Shown in pieces: positions 40,700-64,000 of a stretch of DNA of 64,000 nt (the stretch's first letter is position 1; every line of letters begins with the position of its first letter). Source of the stretch: Monocercomonoides exilis PA203 (taxonomy: Eukaryota > Protista > Preaxostyla). The position numbers and the translations under genes were made by a program. Under the pieces are notes generated by a model. It was given only the letters and a program-made list of their open reading frames with translations. It did no database searches and was not told the origin of the DNA. Location: contig LSRY02000047.1 in assembly GCA_001643675.2 (NCBI GenBank), forward strand, positions 434,001 through 498,000, in the 5' to 3' direction.

Positions 40700-42570
40700 G
40701 CCTTTTCAGTTGATTCATTCTCTTTTTCTTCATTTTTTGAATTTATTTTCTTTCTTTTCTTTTTTCCATTCAATAAAAAATTCTTCATCAAAAATTAATT
40801 TTCCAAAATAATCAAACCTTTTTGTTCTTTTCTTCAGAGTCACGGAAGGTTCTTTTTGCAGCTTGGCTAACACTTCGTGCCACTGATGTGACAGTACTCC
40901 GCTCTTCGCTAAAGATGATTTGATTGTTGACGGCAACAAAGATGTTTGCAAAGCTTGTGGAAGCACATCAGCTAGCGCTTCTCGTCGCAAAATAATTGAA
41001 GAAGAAGAAGGTGCTTAGTATTTGGCATTAATTGACTTTTTAAAAACAGCAAACACTGCACGATCCAAAGGCCAGGCAATGCGAGTGGTGTGGGGTGCAA
41101 AGTTGACGATAGCAATTGAAGAATCGGCAAACTTCTTCCATAAGTCAGGCTGCGCTCTTGAAGAATGGGAATCAAGAAGGAGAAGGCAACGTTCATCATT
41201 CTTCTTCAAAGTGTCTCTTCTTTGTGTGATCCCTGGGAGCAACACTTTTTCAGGGTATTTAAGGATAAGTTCTTCATTCATCCGGTCTTCATTTTTGCCC
41301 CAAACATCCAACTACGAATTCAAAACGATGTGTTGTTCATCCGGTAATTTCCTGCAATGCAATATAACAACGCTTTGTTGGGAAAAGCCATCAGCTGCTG
41401 CTGCTACTACAAGAGCAGCATTTGGTATATTCATCAAAACTTTGGAGTAACCAACAGGTATGTCGGAATGATGGAAAACAAGAGAAGAGAAAGAATCAGA
41501 GAGTCGAAGAGAAGATTCTTCAATATTGAAGATGAGAGAGTTGGAATAATGATGTTGATCATGAAGGATTTGAAGAAGAATGAAAAATGTATAAAGAGTT
41601 TGCTGATGTGATTCAGATAGCCCTGGATATCGACGTTTCGAAGGTGAGAAACCTTTTGCTCAGGATTTTTTTGGAGTATTGATAAAGATAGGCTTTTAGA
41701 AATGTTGACTTCATCTTCTTCGTCGAAGTCGTCTTTTTTCATTTCATTGATAACAGTGTTTATCCAAAAAATTATTAATGGATAAAAACAACATATGGGT
41801 GATTATTTTTGAATACATAAGTAATTCTTTTTGAAAAGTCGCAAATGTTTAATTTTCAAATAAATCAAAATTTTTAATTTTGCTCAAATTTCTGTTTCTA
41901 CTCACGAATCTTCTTTAGAATGTGTGAAATAGCATTATCAAGAAATAGATTCCATATTAGTGAAGTTTGGTGTTTGTTAACAAAAATTTGAGCAGAATGT
42001 GAAATTTTTGATTTATTTGAAAATTAAACATTTGCGACTTTTCAAAAAGAATTACCCACATTTTTTTCAAACAAAATTTGCGGTTTGAAAATTCTTATTT
42101 AATACAAACAAAAGTACACTGAAAAGTGAAAATAATAATTAAAGAAAACTTCATCTTTTTTTCAGCTTGAAATTTTGTTTTTGAAATTGTTTTGATGAAA
42201 TCTATCATTTAAATACAAAAACTCTATTCAATGATATACAATCTTCGAAAAATCAACACCCATAAAAAATATATGATTTTAAAAATAAACATGCATACGA
42301 TAAAAAATGAAATAAACTTTTTTTCTCATTGGCGCAGTATAATAACTTGTCACACATTCATATTCTATTTTCAGCACTCCAAATATCGTTTCCTTTTCTT
42401 CCTGCTTGAATAATTCTAATCTTCCATTTTTTCCTGCCTTTCTTCCTTTTTTCACAGTCAATACAGCAGTATCAATTACCGAGCGAGAAAATTCCTTCAC
42501 ATTTGCAGCATCAGCAGCCCAATCTTCCCCATTAGCAATATTTTTCGTTACACGTTCTAATACACTTTCA
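40700..42570 (-). mobile_element. Decayed pogo/DDE-1 transposase, interrupted by insertions
   Basis: LLLLDSHSSR..APHTTRIAWPLDRAVF (41015-41311), EALADVLPQALQTSLLPSTIKSSLAKSG (40730-40990); N-terminal FSRSVIDTAV..KKGRKAGKNGRL (42279-42500) resembles ISKGCWYRGV..KNNREVGINGRL of the 7.1-7.4 kb copy. Confidence 0.75.
41821..42055. mobile_element. MITE family B copy with 50 bp perfect outer arms
   Basis: GTAATTCTTTTTGAAAAGTCGCAAATGTTTAATTTTCAAATAAATCAAAA is matched by its exact reverse complement ending at 42055. Confidence 0.82.
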
Positions 42571-42982
42571 ATTTAGCGATAAAAAAAAAGATTTCTTTGA
42601 ATAACAGATATTTTCAATTTTATTTTCCTTTTTAATTTCCACAGTTTTAATAATAACGAAAGAATTTATTAACTTGGAATAAATTATTTATGACCTAATT
42701 TATTCCTCATAAATATTTATACCAAGATCGAAATGAAAGTTCAGTTCTTTCATGTTTTCCATTCGATTAAAATAAAGCATGATTTCAAAATAAATGAAAA
42801 GCAAATCTTTAACATAAATAGAAATATTTGAACATTCAAAAACAAAAAACTAAAATTTCAAACTTTAAATACGATCCACCCAAAATATGAATTTTTGAGA
42901 ACCTTTATCATTTCACAAAAGACGTTGATTTGTTGCACACAAGTGTTTTTCTTTTGCTTCGTTTGCAGAAGTTCTCATCGAG

Positions 42983-45900: not shown

Positions 45901-48900
45901 AGACAGTATTCTGACAATCACTGATTGCTCGCTGAAAACAGAAAGTGGAAGCATAGGCACGCCCTTTGCAAAGGTTGCAAAAGGAAAATTGTATCTGGTA
46001 TCGTTCAAAATAGCGTCAGAGAGCATCGACGCCTCTCACGTTATCGTTGTCTCTGGAGATAACTCAAAAGCATTTGTGCAATCCTCAGAGTTCAAAGGGC
46101 TGAGCAGCACTGGAAAGTTTGGGCTTTTCGATGTTTGCATGAGGGGAACAGTCGAAATGGAGAACAGCACAATAACTTCATGCAAAATGAAAAACTCGGC
46201 GATGGTTGGAGACGAGGAAGGAAGCATTCTGATCGCATCAAATGTAACATTTTCTGCAATCGAGCGCAGAGAAGGAGACGGCAGCTGCATCCATTGTTCG
46301 TGCCTTGGCAGACAAGCCAGTGCTTCAACATTCAAAAAATGTCTGTTTGAGAATTGTGCAGTCAAGGAAGCCGGGAGCGGAGGAGGCGCACTGAAATGCT
46401 GCTTGGACACCGGGGCAACCCTGCTCATCGATGAATGCCAATTCGGAAATTGCTCTGCTCCGAGCACCGATACGGTCGGGCATGGCGGGGGCATCTTTGT
46501 AGACTTGCACGCAGCGGATATTGCTTTCAAGATATCCTCACCGTTGTTCATGGCCTCTGCGCCAAACAGCGCATATTACGGGGCTGACGTGTTCATCCAA
46601 TCACCGAATTTGACCACAAGCATTACAAAATTAACCATTCCCTTTGCACACAGCACAAGCACAGGAAATGCCGATTCTCTGCGAGGATTCGACGGAGAAG
46701 ACAAAACAAATGCAATCCCACTCATCTATTTCATTTCCGATGTTGGCAGCATTGTCCATGCAGATTCATCAAATGGACTGGATGTTGCTCCATGCGGATT
46801 CACAGACTATCCGTGCCAGACGCTGAGCCACTCATTGACAAAGCAGATGGCAAAGGCAAAAAATATCGGCCTTTCCGATTCATTCGAGCTGCGTGAAGAA
46901 TTGGCACTTTCCGATCAACACGGAATTCACATCAGCGGTGTCAATTCATGTTCCTTGTTTGTTGTTGTCGAGGCAAATTCTTCACAGCCTGGAGTGATAA
47001 CAATGAGCGATAATTGCCCAACTGCCATGATGGAATTTATCAGGTTCAGGCTGCCAAGCAAGCTCCAAGCGCATTCTTCTTTTGCCTGCCAAAACTCGCA
47101 AGGCGAGCTGGTGCTTCAAGATTCCATTTTCGAGACTCTGGACGAAGCGCCACCGCTTTCTTATAATCTAATCTCAGCATTGTCTGGAAGCATCACCATC
47201 AGCACAGTAACAGCTGCAAACATTCCTCTGTTGGATGCCTCGTTTCTTGTTGCAGCAGGCTTCGCTTCTGTGCTTCTGGATTCCACATCGCTGGCAGGAG
47301 TGACAACCACCTCGCAGCACGGGCTGATATTTCTTTCATCGCAGAATGCCTCTCTTCTCATCGAAGACTCCAATCTGTTGTCACAACACGCCAGCCAAGA
47401 TTTCTCTTTTATTTTCTCCGACAACGCAAATGCAATCGGCATTTCAAACACATCAATGAAGGGATTTGCAAAAAATATGAAAAATGGCTCAGCCATATGT
47501 TGCACAGTTCATGACCAGCAATCGCTAAGGATTATTGGCAGCACGTTTGAGTCATGCAGTGCTGAAGGAGGATATGGAGGAGGGATATATGTGCAGGAGC
47601 ACAAGGGAGGAAAAGTGACAATAGGCAACACAACCGATTCACCCACGATGTTTGCCAAATGCACATCCACAGAAATTGATTCCAGCGGAGGACTGGGCAG
47701 TGGAATATATTTGCACATGACTGATAGCTCAGCAGGAGTTGCAATGAGCAGCATTTCGTTTGTTGAATGTGATGCGGCAAGAGGCGGAAGTTGCGTATTT
47801 GTGGAGGCAATCAATTTGTCCTCTGCAATTACCAGCGAGCTTCTTGGTTTCGAGTTCGAGAAAAGCAACAATTCATCTTTCAGCGAGTTGGCCGGCTTTG
47901 AAGGAGGCAATACAACATTTGTCATACCACTGGTACTGTTTCTCAGAAACTTCTCATCGCCAGCATTCGTCAGCAACAGCGGCATCGACTACAGGATGTG
48001 TGGTTACAAAGACTATTCGTGCAACTCCATAAGCTATGCTGGAGCAGCAAGATATGGCAGCGCAAAAGGCAAGGTGAGACTGGCAATAGACTTCGAATTT
48101 GCAGATCACATTGCATTTGTGCGTCAAGAGATGGAAATCGATGCTGAGGATAATTCAGCAGAATTGCTCGTTCGAAGCGACGGTCTTGGAGAAGGAAGCG
48201 GCTTAATCGAGGTCAGCGTTGATGTTTCGTTCACAGGAATATCGTTCAACATTCCTTTGGACTTCTCTGTGAACCGCGATTGCTTATTGTTGGGCAGTGG
48301 ATCTGTGTTGAGCGTGGCTGATTGCACAGCAAAAGCGATCGGCTCAGGGGTGTCGTACTCGATTGCTTGCTGCACCAGTGGAAAATTAGTGCTGAGCAAT
48401 TTCACAATTCTGAGTGTCGAATTTGCGATGGCAGCTGCCATCAAAGTCAGCGGCAGAGAAGCAAAAGGTGAGTTCGTTTGTCTGAGCATCTACGGGGCAA
48501 AAACGGGGGAATCTCTGGACTGATTGTCGCTGATAATGGAGGGGCGATCGGGCTTAAGGGATCGTTGATAAACTGCACAACAACAATTTTCATGAATCAT
48601 TCGATGATATTTCTGGGCGAGACATCATCGTCGCTGACGGCAACGAATTCATCATTCATTGGTGCAACAAGAAGGAACGGAAACGGCGGCGCCATCTCAG
48701 GAACCATCTGCAACGAAGCTGTGTGCGCTGTGAGCGAGTGCAATTTTTCATCAAACGCATGCATTGACAGCCATTCAAGAGGAGGAAGCATAATTGTGAG
48801 TGTGAAGAAAGGAGGAAAATTTTTGTTCGATTCAAACGAGGTGATGAACAGCAAAGTGGATGCAGAAAATGGCTTCGGCGGAGGGCTGCACTTGAGCTTT

Positions 48901-51900
48901 GAAGATCTGGAAGTGAATTACTCGATGATTGCCATTTCGTTCTCAGGAAATCAGGCACACTTGGGCTCTGATGTTTTTTTGATCTGTCCTTCGCCTCGAA
49001 TAATGATCGACAAAAACAAATGGGCAGGCTCCGCGCAGCCAGGGAGATGATTATCTCAAAACAATGTGGGTCATCAACGACGAAAGCGACCCCACAATAA
49101 GTGTTAGCATGTTGAAATACTTGTTTGTGTCGAACGATGAAATAGTGTTTGTCGACAGAGAAGAAAGCAGCAACACCGCTGGATGCGGAAACAGCAACAA
49201 TCCTTGCCAAGAATTGGCGTTTGGCTTTTCTCAAATGAGCAGCGCAAAAACAACACTGAGCATATTGAAGTCGGCCGACTTGAGCCAGCCAGTCCATTGT
49301 GAAGGCGAGCCTTTGACTATCTGCGGAGTTGAAGAGGTCAACTCTGTCCTGAAGGTGATGAATCACGGCTGCGTAACATTGCTCAAAGGCTCGCAGGCAG
49401 CATATCTGTCTGTTTCTTCCCTGAACATAACGCTTCAGACAACCGCAGAGCAATGTCCGCATGATGCATTTATTGAAGCAGCTGTTGGAAAAGTGTATTT
49501 TGTCTCGTGTATCTTTGGCGATCCGGAAGGCATTGAAAAGCGCTGCTGCGTGTGGATAGCGAAAGGGAATGGATGCTCAATTAGTTTTGGCAATGTTCTT
49601 GTCGCAAAACTACTGTTTCAGTCGAGTTGTGGATTGGCATTCATTCGCAGCGGCTCGCTTTCAATAGACAAATCTTCTGTCGACACAGTATCAACCCCAA
49701 GCGATAGCCTGGTTGTCTGCATTAACGAAGCAGACTCAATAATAAATAGCACAAATGTGACAGCATGCAAGACCAGTCAGGGCTCATTTTATAAGGTCGC
49801 AGGCTCAGGAAGCAATGTAGTCTCTGGACATTGCATGCTGAGTGTATGTACATCTGCAAATGGCAACGGAGGGGCTGTCGGCTGTGAGTTAAGTGAAAAT
49901 GGCCAATTCACGATTAATGGGGCTGAAATAGCATGTTGTGCAGTGAATAAAGACAGTGGAAGGGGCGGAGGAATATTCATGCGTTTGAACGATCCACATG
50001 GAACCTTTTTGCTTGAGGCGATTGACTTCAATCAGAACAATGGCTATGAGGGGCGCGACATGTTCGTTGGCTGCAAAAGCCTAAATCAGAGCATTGATCC
50101 TTCAAATATCAAAGTTCCGTTTTACAACAGCGAAAGCATCGAAATTGTAGACATTAAAGGAAAAGACAGGACACACTTTTCGGATTCTGTGGATCTTGCT
50201 ATGTTTTTGTATCAAAGGCAGGCAAGCAGAGTCTACGTTTCTAAATCAGGATACGACATGATCGGATGCGGAGCTGAAGAATATCCTTGCTTTTCATTCA
50301 AAAGAGGATCCATGAACATCAATGAGCTGTCTTTCGAAAAGGAGCTCTTGATTGATGCCGAGACATATATTCAAGAGCCTGTTGATGTGTCGTCTTTTTT
50401 GATATCTTCTTCGGCAAGTTCAAAAGCAAATATTTCGCTCAGGCCTGAAATTATCGGAAATACCAGAAATGCAGTTCTTGAAGCTACACAGCAACTGACT
50501 GCAACATTTATTTCGTTCCATTTCCCTTCGTCATTTTCATCAAATGTCGACTGCCTGATATTTGCATCAGATATCAGATTCAGAATCATCAATAGTTCCT
50601 TCGTCCAAAGTGGTGCAGATCCACTCTCGTTTGCGTTAATTCGGGCAGCTGGAGGGTCTGTCGAAATGAATTCCTGCAATGTTTCGGCGATAACTGCAAG
50701 ATTTGCTCCGTTTGTCATATCGAGTAAGCTCGATCTTGTAGATGCGCAATTCTCGCAAATAAAAGCACCAGAATCCCTCAGAGGCGGGGCTTTTGACGTT
50801 TGCCTCGCAGAAGACTACACTGTTTCGTTGAAGACCAGTAACCTTTCGTTTTGCGAATGCTCTAGAAATGAGGGGAAAGGAGGCTTTTTGTATCTGGACT
50901 GCACTATGTCTACTGCTTCTCAGCCTCTAAAAATCGATACAATTACTGCCAGCAGTAATATAGCACACATTGGCAAAAACATTTATCTGGAAAGCAAAAA
51001 TTTAAATGAGAGTGTGACGCTGGCTTCTTTTGCATTCGATTATTACGAAATCATGAATGACGCAAATGCTTTTGCTGGGCACGATCCTATTATTGGAGAC
51101 GCAGATCTCTTCATGTTTGTTGTTGAGTACAAAAGCTCGAAAATATATGTGGCATATGCAGGCTTTGATGTGAGGAGATGCGGGAGTGAATTCGAGCCAT
51201 GCAGAACGGCTTGGGCCGGAATACAACATTTAACTGAAGAAAGCCAATCTCCCCAATTGCTCATCACCAAGAAAACCACAATCCAAGATGCTCACGACGT
51301 GAGCGGTTTTATTTTAGAAGGATATTCATCAACATCCGAAGCAGAAAATCACACGTTGCTTTTTTCTAAAAAGATCAAGGAGAGTCTGATCCATTTCTTC
51401 TCAATTCAAGATATTTGACGATCAAGAATTTGCTTGTGTCTGTTTCTTCGGGTTTCGAGAACAGCAAAGGCGGAGTGATTGTGAATGAAAACGGGACTGT
51501 TGAAGCTTTTCAGAGTGGCTTTTCTTCAGAGGCAACAATCGGAACCGAAAGTCATTGTTCGTTTCTGCTGATGCAGCAAGGGTTCCTTCGCGTGTCGCAA
51601 TTTGTTGTATCGTCGTGTAACGTTGGAAAGAATATTTTTGCTGTTTCAAACAATAGTGAATGCACTTTTAACGAAATGGCAATATCGAATGTGAACATAA
51701 CTGAAGCGTGTATATGTCTGGCTAATTCTTCATCAATGGCAAGTATCAACAAGGCTGTTGGCTGTGTAATAACTATGGGGAATTCGTCTTTTGCTGGTGT
51801 TTCCAGAAGCGATAACGACTCGTGTATTATGGAATCCGCATCTGAAGGAGGAATTGTTCAGATCAGAAATTGTTCGTTCAGAGAATGCAGGTCCAGAGAT

Positions 51901-54900
51901 AGCGAAAGAGGCGGAGTGGCGTTTTTAAACCTGGGCGAATATTCGTCATTCGCATTTTTGTCATCATCAATAATTCAAAGCTTTTGCAGTGAAGAATACG
52001 GGAAAGGAGGAGGGACTTATCTTTTGTTTGGAGGAGTTGGGGATCTAAACTTTCTTTTCCAAAACTCAACGTTTAGCGGAAATTCCGCTTTTATTGGACG
52101 AGACGTTTTTATAGAATGTTTTAGTCTTTCTTCGCAGATCAATGAAAGCCAGTTCAGGATGGATCTTCGGGAAAGTGAGTATCACAGATCAAATGCCATT
52201 TACGGAATAGACAAGACAGACCATGCCTCAACGCCTTTTGATTTAATGGAACTTATTACAATGTTCCAGAACGATCGTATTGTTGTGTCGTCAAATTTTG
52301 AAGCAGGTGGAGAGAATAGCAAACAATGCGGAAAAATAAATTTTCCTTGCTTGTCAATCGATTATGGCCTGAAGCATGTAACATATGATTTATTAACTCA
52401 AGTGCTAATAGACATCTCATCGTCTCTTGAAGCAGAAATTACACTCGATGGAATAAGTGTTATGTCTCTTTCAAAGAATATTTGCGATGTGACGGTTAAT
52501 CTCATAAACAGAGGCGAATCAAGTTATGTCATCACAACAAATTTGCAAAGTTCCGTTTCTGACATAAGATTTCTGCTATCCTCCTCTTTGCTCAACTTTT
52601 GTTTCTCTTTCATTTTTGTGGAGAACGGTTTTTTGGATATCGATAATTGTGCCCTTGCTCCAGCATCGAGTGATTTTGGGGGTCAAAGAATTGCTTCTGA
52701 TAAGCAATTGTTAGGCGCTCATATAATTGTGGTTGAAAATGGCATGTTGCATGTCAATCACTTGGAGATTAATAGTTTTTCTTGTTCAAAATCAATGATC
52801 GTACTTGGGAAATCCGAAAACAACTCAATTTTAACAGGATTGTGCGTAAATGATATTGACATTTCCGATGCAAGCGTTATTGACATTTATCAAAGGAATT
52901 CTGAAGACAAAAAAATACTTTGATCGGAAACGTAACTCTTTCAGCATCATTATTCAAAAATATAGTTTCTTCAGCTTCGAGTGACAGCTGTATTATTTCG
53001 TGTTCAGATATTCCTCAATTATATGCACAGAATAGCACAATATGTAATTGTTCAATGCCAGATGGAGGACGCATCATGAAATGTGAAAAATGTCAACACT
53101 TTTATTTAGGTTCCTGTTTGATTGATGGTGGATATGAACGGAACAAAACCAATGATAATGAACACAATGAAAACTATATATGCTACTGGAATGCGTCGCT
53201 TGCGAGTATTGTAAATTGTTCGGCAGAAATCAAGGATTCCACTTTTGCAAACTCAATCAAAGGTGGAGTGGCAATTTTTGGAGGAAATGTTTCTATAATT
53301 GAAGGAAAATTCGAAGATAACGATCCGCAAATATTTAGATATCCTTCGATTCGCCGTAATATTTTTTGCTCTGGAAATGGGGTGTTGAATATTGAAAGTC
53401 TAAAGGGAGGAGATGGGCTTCTTCCTAATTCTTCGCTATGGATTCTTAATGATGGATGCGAACTTTTAGGAGTGCCATCTGAGCGTCTGTCTCCGTTTTT
53501 CATTCCGACTTTGGAAAAAGTGGAAAGTGAACGCAGCGCAGAAGAAATCAGTTTTACAATGAAAGGAACGCTCCTTCTTCCTTGCAACTTATCTTTCCAG
53601 CTTATCGCAACCATTGATGAGACAGACTCTATTGCGACGTATCAATTTTGTGATGACGGATTTGTTTCAGAAGAAGAAGTGCACAGCGCAATAGACATAT
53701 CGGAAATTCCATTTATTCCTGAGACAGCAGAAGTATCTATTCGAATTCTTTTTGGGAGTCGCGAAATTCCAAAGCAAACTGATGCGTTTATCTTGAAAAA
53801 CAGAAGTGAATCTCAACCAATAGAAAATGGGAATCTTTCCAAAAGTGAAAATGAGCAAAAATCATCCTGGACATTGATTGTAATTGTTATGGCAGTTGTT
53901 CTTTTGCTTGTTCTGATTATACTTGTGATATTCATTGTTCGATGGAGGAAGGCCAAAAACAGGACAGAAGAACTGGAAGAGATTGTGAATGACAATATAA
54001 AAAAGGATCCGAAGGCGTTCGAGATGGTTACGATGGAGATGTCGCCAGAGGAACAATGGAAAAGGGACGAAAGGGAGGCTGAGAAGAAGAATGAAGAGAA
54101 GATCAAGAGGAGGGTGTATGACACAAATATGGAACATTCAGAGTCATCAGAGCATCTTCTCTCCGAGAGTGGTTCAACTGAATACATTCTGGGAAGAGAC
54201 TCAGACAAGATCCCAGAATGGATGCTGGAGAAGGTTGATGAGAAAGAGGAAGAGTCCAGAAAGAGAACGCCATCGCCTTCCATTTCATCCACTTCAACAA
54301 CTGATTCAGATTCCACTTTTGTTCGAGGGGGAGGATCTATGCCCAACCACCTCGTCCATGTCGAATCTGGTGGATGCAATGGCATGCTCGTCTCCACACG
54401 AGAAGCTGATTGTAGATCTGAGGGATTCGTTGTTCATGCTGCTTCATGGGCTGAATAAGACAAAAGAGATGCCGATTGGCACTCTGCAGGAGAGAGAGCA
54501 GACAGCTGCCCAAATCCTGTTCTGGGTGGCCAATCTCGCTCTTCACTCGTTTGATGAAATGGAAAATGAATTATCTTCTCTTGCCGATCTGAGTCCGCAC
54601 ATTGTGCTGTTCTCCGAACACATGGTTATTTGCATTGTCATGCATTCAGACTTCTCTTCGGATGATTCAGACTTATCATCCATTTCATCTTCCACCATCA
54701 TCACATCATCATCTGATATTTCAGTGATGAGTGAGAGATTTACAGACTCGCCTCCCCCTTCATCGGCTTTTGAGGATGAGAATGATTTCAAAAAGGAGTG
54801 CATGAGGTGGAAGGCGCCAGAACTGTTGATCAACAAGAAGATGGGAGCGACAAAAGAATCTGTCTCATTCTCGATAGGGATGATGCTGTGGGAGTGCTTG

Positions 54901-55194
54901 TCTCTTCAGATCCCATTTGGAGAATATGAAGCAGAAACAGCTGGGCAGAAGATAAAAGATGGGCAAAGGCCGAACGAGACACTAATAAATGGCACATCTT
55001 TTGAAGCTACAGTAAAGCGCGGATTAAGTCAAAAGGCAGAAGAAAGACCGACTTTGATACAGTTGAAACGTGAGTTTATCCAGCATTTTCCAGCAGGAGC
55101 CACAGTACTGACAATGTCTGATGCAATAGATATAAATGAAAGCAGAACGGCAGAACAGAGTGCCACCATGCAGAACGATGATCATTCTTTTTAA
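42983..55194 (+). CDS. Giant type I membrane protein (~4,070 aa): signal peptide, repeated parallel beta-helix modules, TM helix, degenerate protein-kinase C-lobe; five frameshifts in this copy
   Basis: Six consecutive ORFs (42983, 48478, 49064, 51415, 52920, 54091) are colinear. GG(A/G)(I/L/V) and F..N/C motifs, eight CG-x4-5-(P/S)C motifs, TM WTLIVIVMAVVLLLVLIILVIFIV followed by RWRK, then MRWKAPELL, FSIGMMLWECL..IPFGE, ERPTL. The inverted copy reads through the last three frameshifts. Confidence 0.88.
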
Positions 55195-55409
55195 ATCAAA
55201 AATTAAATTTAATAAGATCTATGTTTATTTTATGTAATTAATGTATTTACAAGTTTTAATAAAATTGCATTTTTTTTGTTCTAAATAATTAATTCTTCTT
55301 CAAAAAAGTGCTTTTTAACAAATTGTTATAATTGTGGCTTCTTTAGCATTTCATATTTTAATAAAAAACTCCAATGCAATCGAAAGTTATGTTGAAAAAT
55401 TAGCAATTC

Positions 55410-58400
55410 ATTAAGAAAGAAAACAGACATTCAAATTCTTCTCTTCATATTGAGAGATGTCACTTAATGGGACATGTCACTTTAAGTGATAAAAAAAAAT
55501 CATACGTGGTGATCGGTCCATCTTCTGCGCTAGCAAAACCAAATTAGGCGCGAAAAGAGAAGAGTTAAAAATATTAAACCATTTAAACGCTTCGAAGAAA
55601 TTAAACATATTGGGGTTGGGAAACAAATGTGGTGGGCAAAAAGAAGAATTTGAATGTCTGTTTTCTTTCTTAATTTAAATGCAGAACATTTAAATTATCA
55701 AGAAAACCTCCATTCAAATTCTTCTCTTCTTATTGAGAGAACAGCTATTTGTTGGAAGTTGATGTTTTGCCATCTTCACATTTTCTTGAAAATCTTAAAT
55801 CATAAATAATAGCTGCTTTCTTGGCTTGTGACCTTGTGAATATCATGCCACTTCATCTTTCGTCTCCCTTTCTTCCTTTCTCTTTTGGGCAGTGCTGTCC
55901 AGTCTTCGCTGGGTTATGGGTTTTTTCATTTCTCGGATGGCATTACATTTTCTTTCCTCTTGTCCTCTTCATTTTAACTTCTTTCATCTGAATCATTTTC
56001 ACAGTCTCCTCCACATAAGCGTCGATTAATTCGCTAATGCTGTCTTCGTCTGAACTTGTCCTCTCATTGATCTGGTCTCTAACTCTATCATCCTCCTCGT
56101 TGCTTGTCTGGCTTCCTTCTTCATCTGATCCGTCACTCTTCTGTTCGTTAATTGGACCAACAATCACTTAAGCCATGGAAGATGCAAGATTTCCCTTGAA
56201 GTTATGTTTAACAAGTGAATTTATCCTTGGAGATAGTCTGGGAAGCAAGGCTATTTGAGACAGTGGAATCCCAGCCATCGTCAGAGCCGACAAGGTCGCC
56301 TCTTTAAGTGAGAAAGGAGGAAATTTCTGTGGGGCTCCGGCTGTCTTCATTGCCTCTCCAGCCAACCTGCGGATTCCCGATGCTGTGAGAGGTTGGAAAG
56401 ATGTGGTGTTGAGCAAAAGTTTTTGGACTTCTGCTTTTGCAGAACAGCTGTACACAGATCACGTATTGATGAAGCTGGGCATATTAATGGCATATCCGGA
56501 AGAAATGGAACTGCAATTTCTGTTCTTGTTTGTGATGTCTTCAATGCTGTATCCAAATAGACACCCTCATCTTCAAACCGAGAGTCCTTTATGCTTATCT
56601 TCTCCAACTCCGTAAACCTGCAAGCAGAGAAGAGCATTGACAACGTTATGACCTTCATTGTTTGTTCCTTAAAAGATAACAAATTGTTGGATCTCAGATC
56701 ACGATAGTATTTTAATAATTTTTTGGGTTCAAAATCTAAGGTGCAAGTTTCTTTTTCGAGTTTTCTGTTCTGCGAAAGGCACGAAACAGAATCCGAATGA
56801 TTGCAATGTTTTCATAAACGGTATTAAAAGCAAGAACAAAGAAAAAGGATACAGCGGCTCTGATCAACTACAACGAAGAAAACAAAACATCTCTATTTTT
56901 CATTGTCAAAAACACATTTGCACATTTGATATTCCACTCCGGTAAATTGTCTGATATATGCCCATGGGCACATTTCTTCCAGTGGTCTGCAAAGTGTGCA
57001 AAGCTGAATAAATACCCATCCCATGTTGTCTTAGCAATGCTAGCCTTGCACTCGTTCGCGAGCTCCACGGAAACTCCTCTTTCATGCGATGAAGGCATCC
57101 ACCATGAATTGCCTCTTTATTTGATGGATTGAGCAGGATTACTTTCATCTTCCCTGGAGGAAGACAGGCTCCCATCTTCTTCATCCATGGCCCCTCACGA
57201 AGAATGTTGGAGCTGTAATTCAATTCCAAGCTGTGGCAGTTGATCGTTCGAAGGAGGACATCCCAATTCTGACCCTTCCAGCTCGGCAGAAGTATAATCG
57301 CTCGAGCTTTCTCCATCTGAGCCTTTCGTATTACCATCGGAATCAGAGGAATCGGAGGATGTGCAAGAACATTATCAAATCTCCACAAAACTGTCAAACC
57401 ATTTTTTGCAGGTGGACTGCCCACACCACACCATCTTTCCACTTTGTGATTGCGCCAAAGCAAAAGCATCGAGAATCGGTCTCACTTACAAAAGAGAAAA
57501 AACCTTTTTGAAAACTTCATCCTTTATTTCGTTGTTGCCTGCCATTTCCAATCGAGACAGCGCATCTGCTCTGTGGTTCTTTCTTCCTGGAAGATGTTGT
57601 GCTCATATTATCAGATTCCTCTCCTCTGTCCATTTCCATTCTTGAATTTAACAGGACGAAGATTCTTCCCATCGTTCCAACGATTCACGTTGTAGACTAC
57701 TGAGCTGTTGTACGACCGAAGCAATAAACGAGTTATTTTGTTGTCCTGGAAAGTCTGGGCAAAATGGTGCAAAGCTAGCAAAACCGCTATCAGTTCCCTA
57801 TTATTGGACGACTGGTTGTGGACATATTTGGGAAAACTGTCATGCCAATCCAAAAGATTGTTGTTGATTCTGAATGTCGCACCCCATGCTTGTTCCGCTG
57901 CATCTGTAGTCAGAACAGCTTGAAGAATGAAAACCAAAGCTAATTCCCGATTCTTGGTCTGCCTCAATGTCCTCCTCCATTCTCTGATCTCGTTGAAGAC
58001 TGATGCATTCATCCTCATCATACCGTTCCATCCGACTGTTCTAACATTATTTTGGAACAAGAAATGCATAGCGACGAGATGAAGGGATGTGTCCGGGATG
58101 ACAAAACGAGCTGCGTTTAGCTTCCCCATCGCTGAAGCTCAGTCTATCACATAAATCTGTTTAGCTCTTATGAATAATTTCTCTCAATGCCTCAGCAGCT
58201 CTTGAAGAGAAGAACGCCTTTTTTCGCTCAATTGAACTGTTTATTTATCTGTGTTCAAAAAACCACCAAGAACACAAACTTCTGTGTTGGTTTCAGCTGA
58301 CATTTCTCTTTGTTGATGAGCAATCCTAAACTTTTTAAAAACAGAATAACTTCTTCCGAAATTTTTTTCAGTAAGCTGCAGTCTTTGTGCAACAGAATAA

Positions 58401-59567
58401 GATCGTCAAAGCAAGAAACTACTCTGACTTCACATCTTGCCTTTATTGCAGCTGTCACTTTCCTCATTATCTTCCAGAAAAAACAAGGTGAATCTGTAAA
58501 GCCAAATTGCATTCCTTCGAAAACAAAGTCTTGTTCTTCGAACCGAAAATGAAGAAACGGCTTCAGGTCTTCGGATACTGGTATTAAGTAATACGCCAGT
58601 GAAAGATCCAATGTTATCGCAAAGTCACTTTTTTTCATCTAACGCTTAACCGTCCGTTCGCTTTCGCATTTGAAATGCGACTTTTTCATTGAAGCATTCA
58701 GATGACGGCAATCCAGGATTTGGCGCCAGGAGCCTGACAACTTCCTGATGAGAGAGATTTTGTTCCGAAAAATGATCTGTAATGGAGGTATTGTGCTGAC
58801 GATGTTTGTCTACAGTTGTTCTTTAAACACGTTTCTGAATACCAATCGCTGTTCCATGCTCATGTGCGTTGCTCCGTCCAACAGTGATTTCTTCCTCAGT
58901 GCTTCCTTTGCTTTTATGTTTGTCCATGTAGCGTGCGCTTCCTGTTTTACAAGGTTTCCTCCTTTGATCTTATCCCATTCCTCCAAAAACTACGCTGTCC
59001 TGCCTCCAATCCTCTCTTGTCTCCACAAATATTTCCTGCCTCCATCGGAATGTCTTGAAGCACCCTTCTTCCAAGTCTCCCCTGCTCTTCTCTGGGAGCT
59101 TCTGAAGCGGTACTGACTTCCTGTCGTCCGGGGCCACCACCGAAAAAACTGCCTTCCGCTGAGACTTCTTGAAAACTCCACTCGATGGGTTGCTCTGTGA
59201 TAATCGTCTGTTTTTCTTGTCAATTTACTGTAAACTGCAGCTCTTTGAATTTGTTTCAATTCCAGTCTTGTCTCCTCCAATATATCCTGTTGCCTCTTCG
59301 TAAGTTATCAACAAGTTGTCTCGGTATCCAAACTGTGAAGGTCGAGAAAAAATTGAGGGAAAAGTGGAGGATGGTGAAATCATATTGAAAGAGGATATTA
59401 TTGGCCCACCACCAAGCACTGCTTGGTCAGTAGAAAGCTCAATTCCAGAAGCTGCATATGGTTGAGGAGTGATGAACATTTTTGATCACTCCTCTAGTAA
59501 CATGTCCCATTAAGTGACATCTCTCAATATGAAGAGAAGAATTTGAATGTCTGTTTTCTTTCTTAAT
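55410..59567 (-). mobile_element. Decayed DIRS-type tyrosine-recombinase retrotransposon (gag fragment, RT, RNase H, methyltransferase-like domain, YR, ICR)
   Basis: RT TLDLSLAYYLI, GMQFGFTDSP, VSCFDDLIL (58255-58750); RNase H LTTDAAEQAWGA, SSNNRELIAV, HLPGRKNHRADALSR (57540-58129); MT-like W....LAHPPIPLI..ILLPSWKGQNW (57100-57500); YR LFSACRFTEL, LKT, CPASS (56168-57098). Inverted termini and an internal complementary region are present. Confidence 0.92.
55642..55740 (-). other. DIRS internal complementary region (ICR)
   Basis: 55642-55674 is the exact reverse complement of 55410-55442 (33 nt); 55711-55740 repeats 55428-55457 (29/30); an 11 bp stem hairpin (55671-55697) lies between them. 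Confidence 0.85.
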
Positions 59568-59782
59568 GAATTGCTAATTTTTCAACATAACTTTCGATTG
59601 CATTGGAGTTTTTTATTAAAATATGAAATGCTAAAGAAGCCACAATTATAACAATTTGTTAAAAAGCACTTTTTTGAAGAAGAATTAATTATTTAGAACA
59701 AAAAAAATGCAATTTTATTAAAACTTGTAAATACATTAATTACATAAAATAAACATAGATCTTATTAAATTTAATTTTTGAT

Positions 59783-62700
59783 TTAAAAAGAATGATCATC
59801 GTTCTGCATGGTGGCACTCTGTTCTGCCGTTCTGCTTTCATTTATATCTATTGCATCAGACATTGTCAGTACTGTGGCTCCTGCTGGAAAATGCTGGATA
59901 AACTCACGTTTCAACTGTATCAAAGTCGGTCTTTCTTCTGCCTTTTGACTTAATCCGCGCTTTACTGTAGCTTCAAAAGATGTGCCATTTATTAGTGTCT
60001 CGTTCGGCCTTTGCCCATCTTTTATCTTCTGCCCAGCTGTTTCTGCTTCATATTCTCCAAATGGGATCTGAAGAGACAAGCACTCCCACAGCATCATCCC
60101 TATCGAGAATGAGACAGATTCTTTTGTCGCTCCCATCTTCTTGTTGATCAACAGTTCTGGCGCCTTCCACCTCATGCACTCCTTTTTGAAATCATTCTCA
60201 TCCTCAAAAGCCGATGAAGGGGGAGGCGAGTCTGTAAATCTCTCACTCATCACTGAAATATCAGATGATGATGTGATGATGGTGGAAGATGAAATGGATG
60301 ATAAGTCTGAATCATCCGAAGAGAAGTCTGAATGCATGACAATGCAAATAACCATGTGTTCGGAGAACAGCACAATGTGCGGACTCAGATCGGCAAGAGA
60401 AGATAATTCATTTTCCATTTCATCAAACGAGTGAAGAGCGAGATTGGCCACCCAGAACAGGATTTGGGCAGCTGTCTGCTCTCTCTCCTGCAGAGTGCCA
60501 ATCGGCATCTCTTTTGTCTTATTCAGCCCATGAAGCAGCATGAACAACGAATCCCTCAGATCTACAATCAGCTTCTCGTGTGGAGACGAGCATGCCATTG
60601 CATCCACCAGATTCGACATGGACGAGGTGGTTGGGCATAGATCCTCCCCTCGAACAAAAGTGGAATCTGAATCAGTTGTTGAAGTGGATGAAATGGAAGG
60701 CGATGGCGTTCTCTTTCTGGACTCTTCCTCTTTCTCATCAACCTTCTCCAGCATCCATTCTGGGATCTTGTCTGAGTCTCTTCCCAGAATGTATTCAGTT
60801 GAACCACTCTCGGAGAGAAGATGCTCTGATGACTCTGAATGTTCCATATTTGTGTCATACACCCTCCTCTTGATCTTCTCTTCATTCTTCTTCTCAGCCT
60901 CCCTTTCGTCCCTTTTCCATTGTTCCTCTGGCGACATCTCCATCGTAACCATCTCGAACGCCTTCGGATCCTTTTTTATATTGTCATTCACAATCTCTTC
61001 CAGTTCTTCTGTCCTGTTTTTGGCCTTCCTCCATCGAACAATGAATATCACAAGTATAATCAGAACAAGCAAAAGAACAACTGCCATAACAATTACAATC
61101 AATGTCCAGGATGATTTTTGCTCATTTTCACTTTTGGAAAGATTCCCATTTTCTATTGGTTGAGATTCACTTCTGTTTTTCAAGATAAACGCATCAGTTT
61201 GCTTTGGAATTTCGCGACTCCCAAAAAGAATTCGAATAGATACTTCTGCTGTCTCAGGAATAAATGGAATTTCCGATATGTCTATTGCGCTGTGCACTTC
61301 TTCTTCTGAAACAAATCCGTCATCACAAAATTGATACGTCGCAATAGAGTCTGTCTCATCAATGGTTGCGATAAGCTGGAAAGATAAGTTGCAAGGAAGA
61401 AGGAGCGTTCCTTTCATTGTAAAACTGATTTCTTCTGCGCTGCGTTCACTTTCCACTTTTTCCAAAGTCGGAATGAAAAACGGAGACAGACGCTCAGATG
61501 GCACTCCTAAAAGTTCGCATCCATCATTAAGAATCCATAGCGAAGAATTAGGAAGAAGCCCATCTCCTCCCTTTAGACTTTCAATATTCAACACCCCATT
61601 TCCAGAGCAAAAAATATTACGGCGAATCGAAGGATATCTAAATATTTGCGGATCGTTATCTTCGAATTTTCCTTCAATTATAGAAACATTTCCTCCAAAA
61701 ATTGCCACTCCACCTTTGATTGAGTTTGCAAAAGTGGAATCCTTGATTTCTGCCGAACAATTTACAATACTCGCAAGCGACGCATTCCAGTAGCATATAT
61801 AGTTTTCATTGTGTTCATTATCATTGGTTTTGTTCCGTTCATATCCACCATCAATCAAACAGGAACCTAAATAAAAGTGTTGACATTTTTCACATTTCAT
61901 GATGCGTCCTCCATCTGGCATTGAACAATTACATATTGTGCTATTCTGTGCATATAATTGAGGAATATCTGAACACGAAATAATACAGCTGTCACTCGAA
62001 GCTGAAGAAACTATATTTTTGAATAATGATGCTGAAAGAGTTACGTTTCCGATCAAAGTATTTTTTTTGTCTTCAGAATTCCTTTGATAAATGTCAATAA
62101 CGCTTGCATCGGAAATGTCAATATCATTTACGCACAATCCTGTTAAAATTGAGTTGTTTTCGGATTTCCCAAGTACGATCATTGATTTTGAACAAGAAAA
62201 ACTATTAATCTCCAAGTGATTGACATGCAACATGCCATTTTCAACCACAATTATATGAGCGCCTAACAATTGCTTATCAGAAGCAATTCTTTGACCCCCA
62301 AAATCACTCGATGCTGGAGCAAGGGCACAATTATCGATATCCAAAAAACCGTTCTCCACAAAAATGAAAGAGAAACAAAAGTTGAGCAAAGAGGAGGATA
62401 GCAGAAATCTTATGTCAGAAACGGAACTTTGCAAATTTGTTGTGATGACATAACTTGATTCGCCTCTGTTTATGAGATTAACCGTCACATCGCAAATATT
62501 CTTTGAAAGAGACATAACACTTATTCCATCGAGTGTAATTTCTGCTTCAAGAGACGATGAGATGTCTATTAGCACTTGAGTTAATAAATCATATGTTACA
62601 TGCTTCAGGCCATAATCGATTGACAAGCAAGGAAAATTTATTTTTCCGCATTGTTTGCTATTCTCTCCACCTGCTTCAAAATTTGACGACACAACAATAC

Positions 62701-64000
62701 GATCGTTCTGGAACATTGTAATAAGTTCCATTAAATCAAAAGGCGTTGAGGCATGGTCTGTCTTGTCTATTCCGTAAATGGCATTTGATCTGTGATACTC
62801 ACTTTCCCGAAGATCCATCCTGAACTGGCTTTCATTGATCTGCGAAGAAAGACTAAAACATTCTATAAAAACGTCTCGTCCAATAAAAGCGGAATTTCCG
62901 CTAAACGTTGAGTTTTGGAAAAGAAAGTTTAGATCCCCAACTCCTCCAAACAAAAGATAAGTCCCTCCTCCTTTCCCGTATTCTTCACTGCAAAAGCTTT
63001 GAATTATTGATGATGACAAAAATGCGAATGACGAATATTCGCCCAGGTTTAAAAACGCCACTCCGCCTCTTTCGCTATCTCTGGACCTGCATTCTCTGAA
63101 CGAACAATTTCTGATCTGAACAATTCCTCCTTCAGATGCGGATTCCATAATACACGAGTCGTTATCGCTTCTGGAAACACCAGCAAAAGACGAATTCCCC
63201 ATAGTTATTACACAGCCAACAGCCTTGTTGATACTTGCCATTGATGAAGAATTAGCCAGACATATACACGCTTCAGTTATGTTCACATTCGATATTGCCA
63301 TTTCGTTAAAAGTGCATTCACTATTGTTTGAAACAGCAAAAATATTCTTTCCAACGTTACACGACGATACAACAAATTGCGACACGCGAAGGAACCCTTG
63401 CTGCATCAGCAGAAACGAACAATGACTTTCGGTTCCGATTGTTGCCTCTGAAGAAAAGCCACTCTGAAAAGCTTCAACAGTCCCGTTTTCATTCACAATC
63501 ACTCCGCCTTTGCTGTTCTCGAAACCCGAAGAAACAGACACAAGCAAATTCTTGATCGTCAAATATCTTGAATTGAGAAGAAATGGATCAGACTCTCCTT
63601 GATCTTTTTTAGAAAAAAGCAACGTGTGATTTTCTGCTTCGGATGTTGATGAATATCCTTCTAAAATAAAACCGCTCACGTCGTGAGCATCTTGGATTGT
63701 GGTTTTCTTGGTGATGAGCAATTGGGGAGATTGGCTTTCTTCAGTTAAATGTTGTATTCCGGCCCAAGCCGTTCTGCATGGCTCGAATTCACTCCCGCAT
63801 CTCCTCACATCAAAGCCTGCATATGCCACATATATTTTCGAGCTTTTGTACTCAACAACAAACATGAAGAGATCTGCGTCTCCAATAATAGGATCGTGCC
63901 CAGCAAAAGCATTTGCGTCATTCATGATTTCGTAATAATCGAATGCAAAAGAAGCCAGCGTCACACTCTCATTTAAATTTTTGCTTTCCAGATAAATGTT
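59783..64000 (-). CDS. Second (inverted) copy of the beta-helix/TM/pseudokinase gene, 3' part, open frame running beyond the window end
   Basis: Uninterrupted 1,393 aa ORF that matches the joined C-terminal ORFs of the plus-strand copy. Confidence 0.9.
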   Translation of the reverse strand, partial: NIYLESKNLNESVTLASFAFDYYEIMNDANAFAGHDPIIGDADLFMFVVEYKSSKIYVAYAGFDVRRCGSEFEPCRTAWAGIQHLTEESQSPQLLITKKTTIQDAHDVSGFILEGYSSTSEAENHTLLFSKKDQGESDPFLLNSRYLTIKNLLVSVSSGFENSKGGVIVNENGTVEAFQSGFSSEATIGTESHCSFLLMQQGFLRVSQFVVSSCNVGKNIFAVSNNSECTFNEMAISNVNITEACICLANSSSMASINKAVGCVITMGNSSFAGVSRSDNDSCIMESASEGGIVQIRNCSFRECRSRDSERGGVAFLNLGEYSSFAFLSSSIIQSFCSEEYGKGGGTYLLFGGVGDLNFLFQNSTFSGNSAFIGRDVFIECFSLSSQINESQFRMDLRESEYHRSNAIYGIDKTDHASTPFDLMELITMFQNDRIVVSSNFEAGGENSKQCGKINFPCLSIDYGLKHVTYDLLTQVLIDISSSLEAEITLDGISVMSLSKNICDVTVNLINRGESSYVITTNLQSSVSDIRFLLSSSLLNFCFSFIFVENGFLDIDNCALAPASSDFGGQRIASDKQLLGAHIIVVENGMLHVNHLEINSFSCSKSMIVLGKSENNSILTGLCVNDIDISDASVIDIYQRNSEDKKNTLIGNVTLSASLFKNIVSSASSDSCIISCSDIPQLYAQNSTICNCSMPDGGRIMKCEKCQHFYLGSCLIDGGYERNKTNDNEHNENYICYWNASLASIVNCSAEIKDSTFANSIKGGVAIFGGNVSIIEGKFEDNDPQIFRYPSIRRNIFCSGNGVLNIESLKGGDGLLPNSSLWILNDGCELLGVPSERLSPFFIPTLEKVESERSAEEISFTMKGTLLLPCNLSFQLIATIDETDSIATYQFCDDGFVSEEEVHSAIDISEIPFIPETAEVSIRILFGSREIPKQTDAFILKNRSESQPIENGNLSKSENEQKSSWTLIVIVMAVVLLLVLIILVIFIVRWRKAKNRTEELEEIVNDNIKKDPKAFEMVTMEMSPEEQWKRDEREAEKKNEEKIKRRVYDTNMEHSESSEHLLSESGSTEYILGRDSDKIPEWMLEKVDEKEEESRKRTPSPSISSTSTTDSDSTFVRGEDLCPTTSSMSNLVDAMACSSPHEKLIVDLRDSLFMLLHGLNKTKEMPIGTLQEREQTAAQILFWVANLALHSFDEMENELSSLADLSPHIVLFSEHMVICIVMHSDFSSDDSDLSSISSSTIITSSSDISVMSERFTDSPPPSSAFEDENDFKKECMRWKAPELLINKKMGATKESVSFSIGMMLWECLSLQIPFGEYEAETAGQKIKDGQRPNETLINGTSFEATVKRGLSQKAEERPTLIQLKREFIQHFPAGATVLTMSDAIDINESRTAEQSATMQNDDHSF

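Follow-up and report, generated by a model that had tools for sequence, protein, structure and literature searches.

The window, a stretch of 64,000 nucleotides from the genome of Monocercomonoides exilis, lies across a 29.7-kb mirror-image duplication (the C44 palindrome) that holds two giant surface-protein genes around a single-copy DIRS loop. As recorded by the element's own ICR, the 37-nt 5' outer terminus of the DIRS and the flank beyond it have been overwritten by the mirrored 3' outer terminus and its flank. Such overwriting is the signature of a known host break-repair accident and not of new transposon activity. The course of events can be named more tentatively: host fold-back repair at the ITR core could well be responsible, the palindrome itself being most likely older and re-centred on the DIRS element.

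In order to delimit the palindrome, the window was aligned in inverted orientation with the next 10 kb of the contig added. Positions 42630-55496 matched 59479-72347 over 12,873 aligned bases with 99.88% identity, the right arm running 8.3 kb beyond the window end (Table 1). An inverted match of 12.9 kb cannot have arisen by chance. The initial annotation had followed the identity for more than 4.4 kb into host DNA, a figure set by the end of the window; the arms are in fact 12.87 kb each. Outside the ITR they differ by one substitution (46892) and eight single-base homopolymer indels. The outer edge of the left arm (42629/42630) is sharp, with 100% identity up to the last base and random sequence beyond. 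The flank outside this edge is a dispersed repeat, and the unique DNA beyond 72347 shows no homology to it. No paralogs across either outer junction were found. The outer 1.5 kb and the inner 3.9 kb of the arm each occur exactly twice in the assembly. Within positions 1-74000 we found no direct repeat of the arm, that is, no third copy as in ODIRA-type inverted triplication, and with only two arm copies in the assembly the locus does not belong to that type.

Table 1. Coordinates of the palindrome, the DIRS element and the arm genes at C44
Feature	Position	Strand	Remarks
Left palindrome arm, host DNA	42630-55409	+	Inverted match to 59568-72347; 12.87 kb
Right palindrome arm	59568-64000 within the window, on to 72347 (C44:506347)	-	Followed by unique DNA
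Arm gene 1, intronless ORF, 1846 aa	42983-48523	+	No Pfam family
Arm gene 2, giant receptor-like protein, ~2040 aa	49064-55194	+	TM-like segment; C-terminal kinase C-lobe only
Mirror copy of arm gene 2	59783-63964	-	Open for at least 1393 aa
DIRS 3' outer terminus, 19 nt, 3'-type ..AGAAAACAGAC	55410-55428	-	Complementary to ICR 55656-55674
ITR core, 49 nt	55429-55477	-	100% mirrored at 59500-59548; switch inside its inverted homology
3' inner ITR, AAGTGATAAAAA type	55478-55498	-	Differs from 5' inner ITR, as in intact copies
Single-copy loop, DIRS interior	55499-59478	-	3.98 kb; depth ~half of arm
ICR part complementary to 3' terminus	55639-55674	-	35/36
ICR part recording the lost 5' terminus	55675-55740	-	Matches real 5' end of relative L002
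Native 5' inner ITR, GTGATCAAAAATG type, kept	59479-59499	-	Type as in L012, L013, L016 and L002
Chimeric 5' end	59500-59567	-	ITR core 59500-59548, then mirrored 3' outer terminus 59549-59567

The M. exilis assembly was built with Canu from Nanopore reads of strain PA203, which amount to 12.9 Gb with an N50 of 8.9 kb (PMC8767320), and, the one substitution apart, all differences between the arms are homopolymer indels, as is typical of an unpolished consensus. Both would suit an assembly or library artefact, in which a mis-join by Canu, or a Nanopore read that was chimeric or folded back, hides a true locus with one arm and a normal 5' end. We nevertheless consider this very improbable. The window lies in the interior of a 789,622-bp contig, which rules out a contig-end fold-back, and the 4-kb loop is unlike template-complement read-through; together with the arm depth described below, these features exclude a contig-end or read-through artefact. 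Moreover, the alternative 5' end of the window DIRS is absent from the assembly, and the same architecture is found on another contig (C42) with arms that have since diverged to 72-100%, which an assembler could not have produced.

Depth was taken from assembled Logan k-mer contigs of one sample from one study. In two deep runs, X1 and X2, the arm contig 54905-55439 had a k-mer depth of 215.6 and 57.5, while the loop contigs ranged over 83-110 and 27-41, respectively. The resulting arm/loop ratios of ~2.2 and ~1.8 hold at matched GC, and the depths of the 3'-side contig 55448-55671 (92.8) and the 5'-side contig 59257-59529 (84.8) sum to roughly that of the arm. The comparison of arm and spacer depth proposed earlier thus gives an arm about twice as deep as the loop in both deep runs, as far as k-mer contigs assembled from one sample can tell. 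Since assembly errors cannot alter k-mer depth, this makes an assembler artefact unlikely. The palindrome is real, with two-copy arms around a one-copy loop. Two shallow 2016 runs gave GC-biased ratios of only 1.2-1.3; because AT-rich DNA is poorly covered in these runs (depth 0.5-1.7 in the single-copy bin 55544-55717), we did not take this value as a sign of duplication arising in culture. The k=31 contigs gave no link from the 5' inner ITR to the outer end of 3' type. They stop at 55439 and 59537 because one 33-mer recurs in the ICR and because 41 nt of the core recur in another subfamily (L004 type, with a loose contig end at 55429).

Judged by its sequence, the loop element is a DIRS-type (tyrosine-recombinase) retrotransposon, old, decayed and dead. 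It combines RT and RNase H, a tyrosine recombinase, ITRs and an ICR. On the minus strand, RT/RNase H homology extends over 56909-59013 and an overlapping ORF3 with the tyrosine-recombinase region over 55751-59011. PF00078 matches the loop at 58255-58638 (E 2.8e-17) and PF17919 weakly, and for several loop ORFs no Pfam family was found. In tblastn, the RT/RH region is 58-59% identical at the amino acid level to the intact relative L013 and split over two frames; ORF3 is broken into four pieces by several frameshifts, with 55751-56733 keeping 48-69% amino acid homology to the L013 ORF3 in several frames. L013 itself carries RVT_1 and RVT_3, and its ORF3 matches PF00589 with 27.3 bits (cut-off 27.1). 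As the window copy is long dead, the host repair machinery acted here and not DIRS replication. The initial annotation had proposed fold-back priming at the retrotransposon end: the proposed fold-back fits known repair at inverted repeats and would be the work of the host.

Next, we compared the termini of the window copy with those of its relatives. In intact family copies, the ITRs are 79-117 nt long and ~90% alike. The termini of L012, L013 and L016 are asymmetric, with a long 5' outer end (..TCAAGAAAAC[C/T]TCC) as against a short 3' outer end (..AGAAAACA[A/G]AC), and their ICR consists of the 5' end's reverse complement followed by that of the 3' end. In L003, L012 and L013 the ICR complements in full the 3' and 5' ends joined together, whereas that of the window copy agrees with its own 3' end only. 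As the initial annotation had seen, the first half matches the 3' terminus: 55410-55445 and 55639-55674 are complementary at 35/36 positions, including an exact 33-mer (55410-55442 and 55642-55674). The second half (55675-55740) is terminus-like with a different outer part, ..TTATCAAGAAAACCTCC vs ..TTAAGAAAGAAAACAGAC; here 55675-55711 corresponds to the 37-nt 5' outer end (..TTATCAAGAAAACCTCC) and 55712-55740 is core-like. Thus, the 5' end recorded by the ICR is missing from the element.

This recorded end exists elsewhere. The nearest relative, L002 (83%), has exactly ..TATCAAGAAAACCTCC, and its 5' end reads ..AAAATGCAGAACATTTTTTCTATCAAGAAAACCTCC/ATTCAAATTC, as the window ICR predicts. The earlier prediction of a different true 5' terminus, and the suggestion to look for it in other family copies, were therefore sound. 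An ICR half that had merely diverged from a symmetric terminus is ruled out by the asymmetric, predicted 5' ends of L002 and the intact copies. In the window copy, the ITRs (55410-55498 and 59479-59567) share a core that includes CATATTGAGAGATG, and 59500-59567 is a perfect reverse complement of 55410-55477, so that the observed 5' end is indeed an exact copy of the 3' end. The mirrored 3' outer terminus occupies the place of the expected 37-nt 5' outer terminus. Since the native 5' inner ITR is kept, the switch falls inside the ITR core. The claim that the true 5' end and its flank were replaced by a copy of the 3' end and its flank thus gains support from L002 and from the asymmetric intact copies. 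An orphan 5' end of the window DIRS was not found in the assembly. No consistent target-site duplication is seen next to L003, L012 and L013, and every intact 5' flank ends with TCAA.

The DIRS element lies 216 bp downstream of the giant receptor-like gene (arm gene 2), whose PF07714 match covers profile positions 163-257 only (E 4e-8). Its left-arm copy is split into four ORFs by three homopolymer indels while the right-arm copy reads through, and the right-arm mirror of gene 1 is shortened to 887 aa by homopolymer indels. These frameshifts are probably errors of the unpolished Nanopore consensus and not pseudogenisation, which should be considered in annotation.

The paralogous loci bear on the C44 event. 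The closest paralog of the C44 arm is the C36 locus, which is 82% alike over 10.9 kb covering both genes and is itself a palindrome, with 15.4-kb arms, a 374-bp spacer and no DIRS; tblastn revealed no DIRS remnants in its centre. With both genes in palindromic order and no DIRS present, C36 speaks for re-centring. As in C44, the outer edge is found a short way upstream of gene 1. The distance from the edge to the gene-1 ATG is 353 bp in C44 and ~60-120 bp in C36, so the two edges are only roughly homologous. The C36 edge is diverged over 50-100 bp, unlike the sharp edge of C44, which fits a young de novo junction better than an older palindrome. The flanks of both loci have only a MITE-like repeat in common. 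No C44 sequence downstream of gene 2 could be aligned with the C36 inner region; an older C44 centre is therefore deduced and not seen. Gene content and the approximate outer edge are what C44 shares with C36, not the centre.

Paralogous palindromes of the C36 type have a common centre that is 92-93% alike between loci, whereas their own arms are at least 99.5% alike. Substitutions concentrate at the arm edges, and the arm interiors of demonstrably old palindromes differ by 3 substitutions in ~15 kb. Arm identity can therefore not date the event, and we dropped it as a clock. At locus L042, a DIRS of another family replaced the older common centre with a net loss of DNA, using the inverted pair of DIRS 5' end and ICR. 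This replacement of a shared older centre is a further observation in favour of re-centring. At C42:161384-165877, the DIRS family of the window recurs with mirrored flanks and a replaced terminus of the same kind. Both C42 ends carry one hybrid terminus, a 3'-type outer part with the 5'-type TTCC, and such identity requires sequence transfer in both directions. The switch point lies inside or inward of the core in C44, at the outer AAGAAAAC in C42 and at the 5' end/ICR in L042.

In the C44 palindrome, the spacer has about half the copy number of the arms, and the switch falls within inverted homology located where spacer and arm meet, as expected of fold-back repair. Under our preferred explanation, the 49-nt ITR core would have provided the inverted homology for a host break-repair or replication event. 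One strand, with the 5' ITR core at its end, would have folded back and paired with the 3' ITR core, the unpaired tail (the 37-nt 5' outer terminus and anything beyond) would have been removed, and synthesis would then have copied the 3' outer terminus and its flank. The tail-to-tail gene pair most likely pre-existed as an older palindrome, as at C36. In that case, the event would only have re-centred the palindrome on the DIRS at the expense of the old centre, and re-annealing of the newly synthesised strand with the old opposite arm would have been possible.

It is possible, though less likely, that a single de novo fold-back beside one copy of the gene pair made the duplication in one step. 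After resection of a break by the DIRS 5' end, the ITR cores of a single strand would have annealed with each other, the 3' flank would have been copied over 12.85 kb, and the extended end would have been joined without homology to the far side of the break, the unique DNA beyond 72347. This would leave the same anatomy as re-centring and agrees with the published fold-back model (PMC3907307). The sharp outer edge and the uniformly ~100% identical arms (1 substitution in 12.8 kb) are in line with it, as is the unique DNA beyond 72347, whose lack of homology to the opposite flank is expected of an end-joined second junction. Furthermore, ~40% of the scored family members are in near-identical inverted pairs, so palindromes may form often. 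However, the arm interiors of old palindromes are just as identical, and identity is thus no sign of youth. In addition, C36 is already a DIRS-free palindrome of both genes with its outer edge in the same intergenic region, which for independent events would be an improbable coincidence, and at L042, the clearest precedent, re-centring removed DNA instead of adding any. For the same reasons, the initial proposals that the event duplicated the neighbouring receptor gene and that DIRS termini amplify host gene families fared less well: the former is doubtful given C36, and the latter is not shown by the evidence, the best-resolved locus (L042) having lost DNA.

Two routes without fold-back priming are together improbable, even though reasoning from the anatomy each of them yields exactly the observed product. 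In the first, an older palindrome would have acquired a copy of the DIRS insertion on each arm, and a break at the centre would have been healed by single-strand annealing between the directly oriented ITR cores of the two mirrored copies, with loss of one copy and of the centre. In the second, the DIRS would have inserted in or near an old centre, and arm-to-arm gene conversion inward to the ITR core would have made flanks and outer termini symmetric. Arm-to-arm homogenisation is strong in this genome, the C42 hybrid terminus needs transfer both ways, and ITR and ICR cores recombine as direct repeats: in L002, L004-L007, L010, L011 and L017 the 3' outer end is fused to the ICR core. On the other hand, both routes take more steps. 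The annealing route needs a 4-kb insertion converted onto the other arm, the conversion route needs insertion near the centre in several independent cases, and a palindrome with two mirrored DIRS copies was not seen among the loci examined.

Catalysis by the element itself is most unlikely. Apparently intact family members with open reading frames exist (C33 and C1, 98% alike), and a tyrosine recombinase supplied in trans by an active DIRS, joining both ITRs on sister chromatids by inverted-site exchange, would yield the observed product. However, a whole-arm dicentric would be expected and not a 12.9-kb interstitial copy, and the switch points differ among C44, C42 and L042, the last involving another family, which indicates homology-driven rather than site-specific events.

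Our results imply that a dead retrotransposon with inverted ends can serve as a ready fold-back substrate that reshapes host gene palindromes. From the ICR one can read which DIRS end was overwritten; rearrangements of this kind seldom allow that. The three loci examined here suggest that DIRS elements and gene-bearing palindromes are associated throughout the genome of this amitochondriate protist, an association mentioned neither in the M. exilis genome paper (PMC8767320) nor in the literature searched. Each DIRS holds three inverted pairs (5' ITR with 3' ITR, 5' end with ICR, 3' end with ICR), and as a rather unlikely conjecture, DIRS may be systematic palindrome pivots, breaks near any copy being channelled into fold-back repair. 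If so, the gene-bearing palindromes that house a large share of the giant receptor-like family would time and again be created, re-centred and turned over by DIRS insertions, and the ICR would be an internal record giving direction and breakpoint of each event. In a stronger form of this conjecture, the family recombinase would help in trans.

DIRS1-group tyrosine-recombinase retrotransposons carry ITRs plus an ICR, and their replication model is reportedly due to Cappello et al. and to Poulter and Goodwin. The DIRS described here resembles this group in its RT/RNase H, overlapping tyrosine-recombinase ORF, ITRs of about 70-115 nt and ICR as the complement of joined ends. Unlike a product of the DIRS1 replication cycle, the window copy lacks the 5' outer terminus and is bordered at either end by one host flank in mirror image. 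In Tetrahymena rDNA, palindromes arise at a free end: a short inverted repeat near a break directs a large palindrome to form or extend, with the DNA between the repeats as its centre; yeast and mammalian models of this process are said to come from Butler, Tanaka and others. C44 shares with these systems the short repeat near a break and the inter-repeat DNA as centre; unlike in Tetrahymena rDNA, the event is not programmed and the repeat is part of a transposon.

Human inv-dup cases are fold-back inverted duplications in which the spacer is single-copy and the junction carries hybrid inverted repeats (Hermetz et al. 2014, PMC3907307). The foldback inversions of yeast are likewise fold-back inverted duplications (PMC7467729), and widely spaced, diverged inverted repeats such as inverted Alu pairs fold back in ssDNA (PMC10164571). 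C44 is similar in its inverted arms, which enclose a single-copy spacer measuring a few kb (3.98 kb as against a human median of 3.4 kb), and in the inverted homology at the boundary, where a junction at homologous repeat sites makes a hybrid repeat. Unlike those cases, which use two separate Alu, L1 or Ty copies, the pair here consists of one retrotransposon's own ITRs or of ITR and ICR; moreover, the C44 duplication is interstitial, small and without terminal deletion, and the locus may already have been palindromic. Primate X/Y palindromes are reportedly long-lived and kept identical by arm-to-arm gene conversion (PMC8327919). Unlike palindromes maintained by conversion in the manner outlined there, C44 has an outer edge that is sharp and not eroded. 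The paralogous palindromes of the M. exilis genome are comparable in that their own arms are at least 99.5% alike, as against 7-8% and 18% divergence between paralogous loci, and in that substitutions pile up at their arm edges.

The palindrome lies inside a contig of 789,622 bp, in an assembly of 82,301,135 bp and 101 contigs. A repeat scan, together with an alignment extended by the following 10 kb of contig sequence (L031), revealed one large inverted repeat, whose arms share 99.88% identity over 12,873 aligned bases. A dead DIRS element makes up the single-copy loop between them; it lies on the minus strand and shows an RVT_1 match and RNase H (Pfam). Spread over several frames, it has homology to both the RT/RH ORF and the overlapping recombinase ORF of L013, an intact relative on contig C33. 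L013 encodes a gag-like ORF, one ORF for RT and RNase H and a further, overlapping ORF containing a Phage_integrase domain. About 12 near full-length copies of this family are present in the assembly, the nearest being 83% identical to the loop copy.

Features of the palindrome and its surroundings in window coordinates (contig depths are to be read only as within-sample ratios, not as copy numbers)
Feature	Position	Description	Depth X1	Depth X2
Left arm	42630-55496
Right arm	59479-72347
Loop	55499-59478	3,980 bp
Gene 1	42983-48523	intronless giant ORF, 1846 aa; one copy per arm
Gene 2	49064-55194	intronless giant ORF, ~2040 aa; TM-like segment and protein kinase C-lobe only; one copy per arm
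Arm-to-arm substitution	46892	the only one outside the ITR
Arm-to-arm homopolymer differences	45622, 46219, 48504, 49042, 50006, 51367, 52908, 54327 and mirror sites	one base each
5' motif recorded by the ICR	55675-55711
Native 5' inner part	59479-59499	retained at right end
Mirror of 3' end	59500-59567	from core outward
Arm contig	54905-55439		215.6	57.5
Loop contigs	various positions		83-110	27-41
3'-side path	55448-55671		92.8	27.4
5'-side path	59257-59529	X1 only	84.8
Dispersed repeat	41130-41796 and 42301-42587	left flank
MITE-like foldback	41821-42055	235 bp
Self-complementary stretch	13916-14930	1 kb, 94%
Perfect inverted repeat	21999-22389 with 22821-23211	391 bp, 431-bp spacer

Homopolymer indels, eight between the arms, occur in both and disrupt ORFs in each, breaking gene 2 in the left arm and gene 1 in the right. 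Because multi-copy regions of the M. exilis Nanopore assembly reportedly remain under-polished (PMC8767320), these indels are probably unpolished consensus errors, and the gene models should therefore not be labelled pseudogenes. Gene 1 matched no family in a Pfam search. The TM/kinase C-lobe tail of gene 2 is part of a very large family: k-mer depth over 54500-55021 was ~200x single copy in all runs, and 1086 first-look candidates came from searching with the arm's 3' portion, with many members of the family sitting as inverted, nearly identical pairs separated by 2-20 kb. Both outer arm edges are sharp; the right adjoins unique DNA and the left a dispersed repeat with at least 35 copies at ~80%. 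This repeat stops 43 bp short of the arm, and its ~500-bp interruption contains a MITE-like foldback that recurs ~600 bp outside the edge of the closest paralogous palindrome, on contig C36. Two smaller self-complementary structures lie elsewhere in the window.

Depth was taken from Logan contigs of four runs of one sample, placed on 54500-59700. As expected for genuine arms, the arm contig was about twice as deep as the loop in both deep runs (X1 and X2), and each inner path stood at about half of arm depth. The contigs break at 55439 and 59537 owing to a 33-mer shared with the internal complementary region (ICR) and to core k-mers shared with another subfamily. Two shallow runs from 2016 gave an arm/loop ratio of 1.2-1.3, which is uninformative since AT-rich DNA is under-covered in both. 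An assembly artefact is very unlikely, given the half-depth inner paths, the internal position in a long contig, a search of the assembly that found no alternative 5' end for this element, and the diverged arms of a second case on contig C42.

Comparing the termini of all fetched DIRS copies in one register, we found that the 5' end of the intact copies L012, L013 and L016 comprises a 37-40-nt outer end (..AATTAAAATGCATAAC..TTGTCAAGAAAACTTCC), the core of the inverted terminal repeat (ITR) and a 5' inner part (TTCGTGATCAAAAATG), and that their 3' end reads flank, 18-nt outer end (TTAGAAAAGAAAACAAAC), core and 3' inner part (GAAGTGATAAAAAGG). Their ICR is exactly the 5' end in reverse complement followed by the 3' end in reverse complement. 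Asymmetry of the termini is therefore their natural state, and the ICR faithfully records both; the identical termini that would have spoken against the initial annotation were not seen in these three copies. That annotation had predicted a lost 5' terminus from the ICR of the window copy, and the nearest relative (L002) carries it, its 5' end finishing ..CTATCAAGAAAACCTCC ahead of the core, the very motif recorded. The window copy retains its native 5' inner part at the right end, followed by sequence that mirrors the 3' end perfectly, the mirror running on through 12.8 kb of flank.

Other terminal variants were observed. In L002, L004-L007, L010, L011 and L017 the 3' end is short: the 3' outer terminus joins straight onto the core of the 5'-record half of the ICR, and both the 3' inner ITR and the remaining half of the ICR (~283 bp in the window copy) are lacking. 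The pattern is suggestive of repeated recombination or template jumping between direct repeats, namely the cores of the 3' ITR and of the ICR. L003 (C39:65839-72043) combines a normal outer terminus at the 5' end with ITRs (117 nt) that are of the 3'-inner type on both sides; over its first 1.1 kb it is unlike its subfamily, and it may represent another ITR-mediated exchange. TCAA directly precedes the 5' terminus in every intact copy (L003, L012, L013, L016), which may reflect a target preference or an element part unrecorded by the ICR.

The second case, L015 (C42:161384-165877), belongs to the same DIRS family and has the same terminus at both ends with mirrored flanks. Its ~7.8-kb arms are now a mosaic of 72-100% identity and so are no assembler product. 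Both ends carry a hybrid terminus (3'-type outer part, 5'-type TTCC), and AAAC is still what the ICR records for the 3' end. This implies that sequence moved both ways, as when mismatches in an annealed stem are repaired. Two further palindromes (C42:140001-151461 and C42:175075-190000; L032-L036; 97.7% and 99.75%) are centred on short non-DIRS sequences near 145,731 and 182,540, with arms 82% alike between the two.

The closest paralog of the window arm lies on C36 (82% identity over 10.9 kb, covering both genes) and is itself a palindrome (C36:1542457-1557851 and 1558226-1573620; L037-L041) with 15.4-kb arms and a 374-bp spacer, in which no DIRS sequence was found; its outer edge lies just upstream of gene 1, as in the window. 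Its inner 3 kb, spacer and gene tail recur at 92-93% in another DIRS-free palindrome (L043, C36:1335500-1342900; arms at least 3.5 kb, 99.77% identical). Given this likeness, both palindromes predate 7-8% divergence, yet their arms remain near-identical (at least 99.7%), so arm identity is no clock in this genome. The C36 arm interior has 3 substitutions in ~15 kb, the remainder lying at the edges, and such edge clustering in the two palindromes points to gene conversion between arms. A third paralog, L042 (C36:1240000-1249300), loses its homology to the shared centre at the same point on either side (2506/6811). Its middle is taken by an apparently intact DIRS from another family (RT/RH 52% amino acid identity to L013), which forms a 4.3-kb palindrome centre in place of the 374-bp-spacer centre. 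Both ends of this DIRS are 5'-type, one being the 5' ITR and the other the ICR part complementary to it; the remaining ICR and the 3' ITR are absent. L042 is thus an older palindrome re-centred via a different DIRS inverted pair, with net DNA loss.

By analogy with these paralogs, the window palindrome may predate its DIRS event. The 5'-end replacement proposed in the initial annotation stands, but its role as origin of the gene duplication is doubtful, as the DIRS-free C36 palindrome carries both genes. De novo duplication by fold-back at the ITR core would suit the perfectly sharp outer edge in the window, where the old C36 edge is eroded, and the lack of a visible older centre; we consider it rather unlikely, because the C36 paralog is already palindromic with a similar outer edge and L042 sets a precedent for re-centring with net loss. 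Our preferred reading, held tentatively, is that fold-back at the ITR core would have re-centred an older palindrome on the DIRS element. Since the inverted pair or switch point differs in every case (window, C42, L042), the events fit homology-driven host repair rather than site-specific recombination, and catalysis by the recombinase is highly improbable. A reading that dispenses with fold-back priming, by annealing of mirrored copies to each other or by conversion, has a small probability.

We found no paper linking DIRS elements to palindromes, and the M. exilis genome paper mentions neither (PMC8767320). The mechanism itself is already known; the new details are where the inverted repeat comes from and how the ICR serves as a record, and the ICR test is what this locus adds. 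The window palindrome resembles published fold-back inverted duplications in its single-copy spacer of a few kb and the hybrid repeat at the junction (PMC3907307), and its structure matches the way in which diverged inverted repeats lying far apart in single-stranded DNA fold back on each other (PMC10164571).
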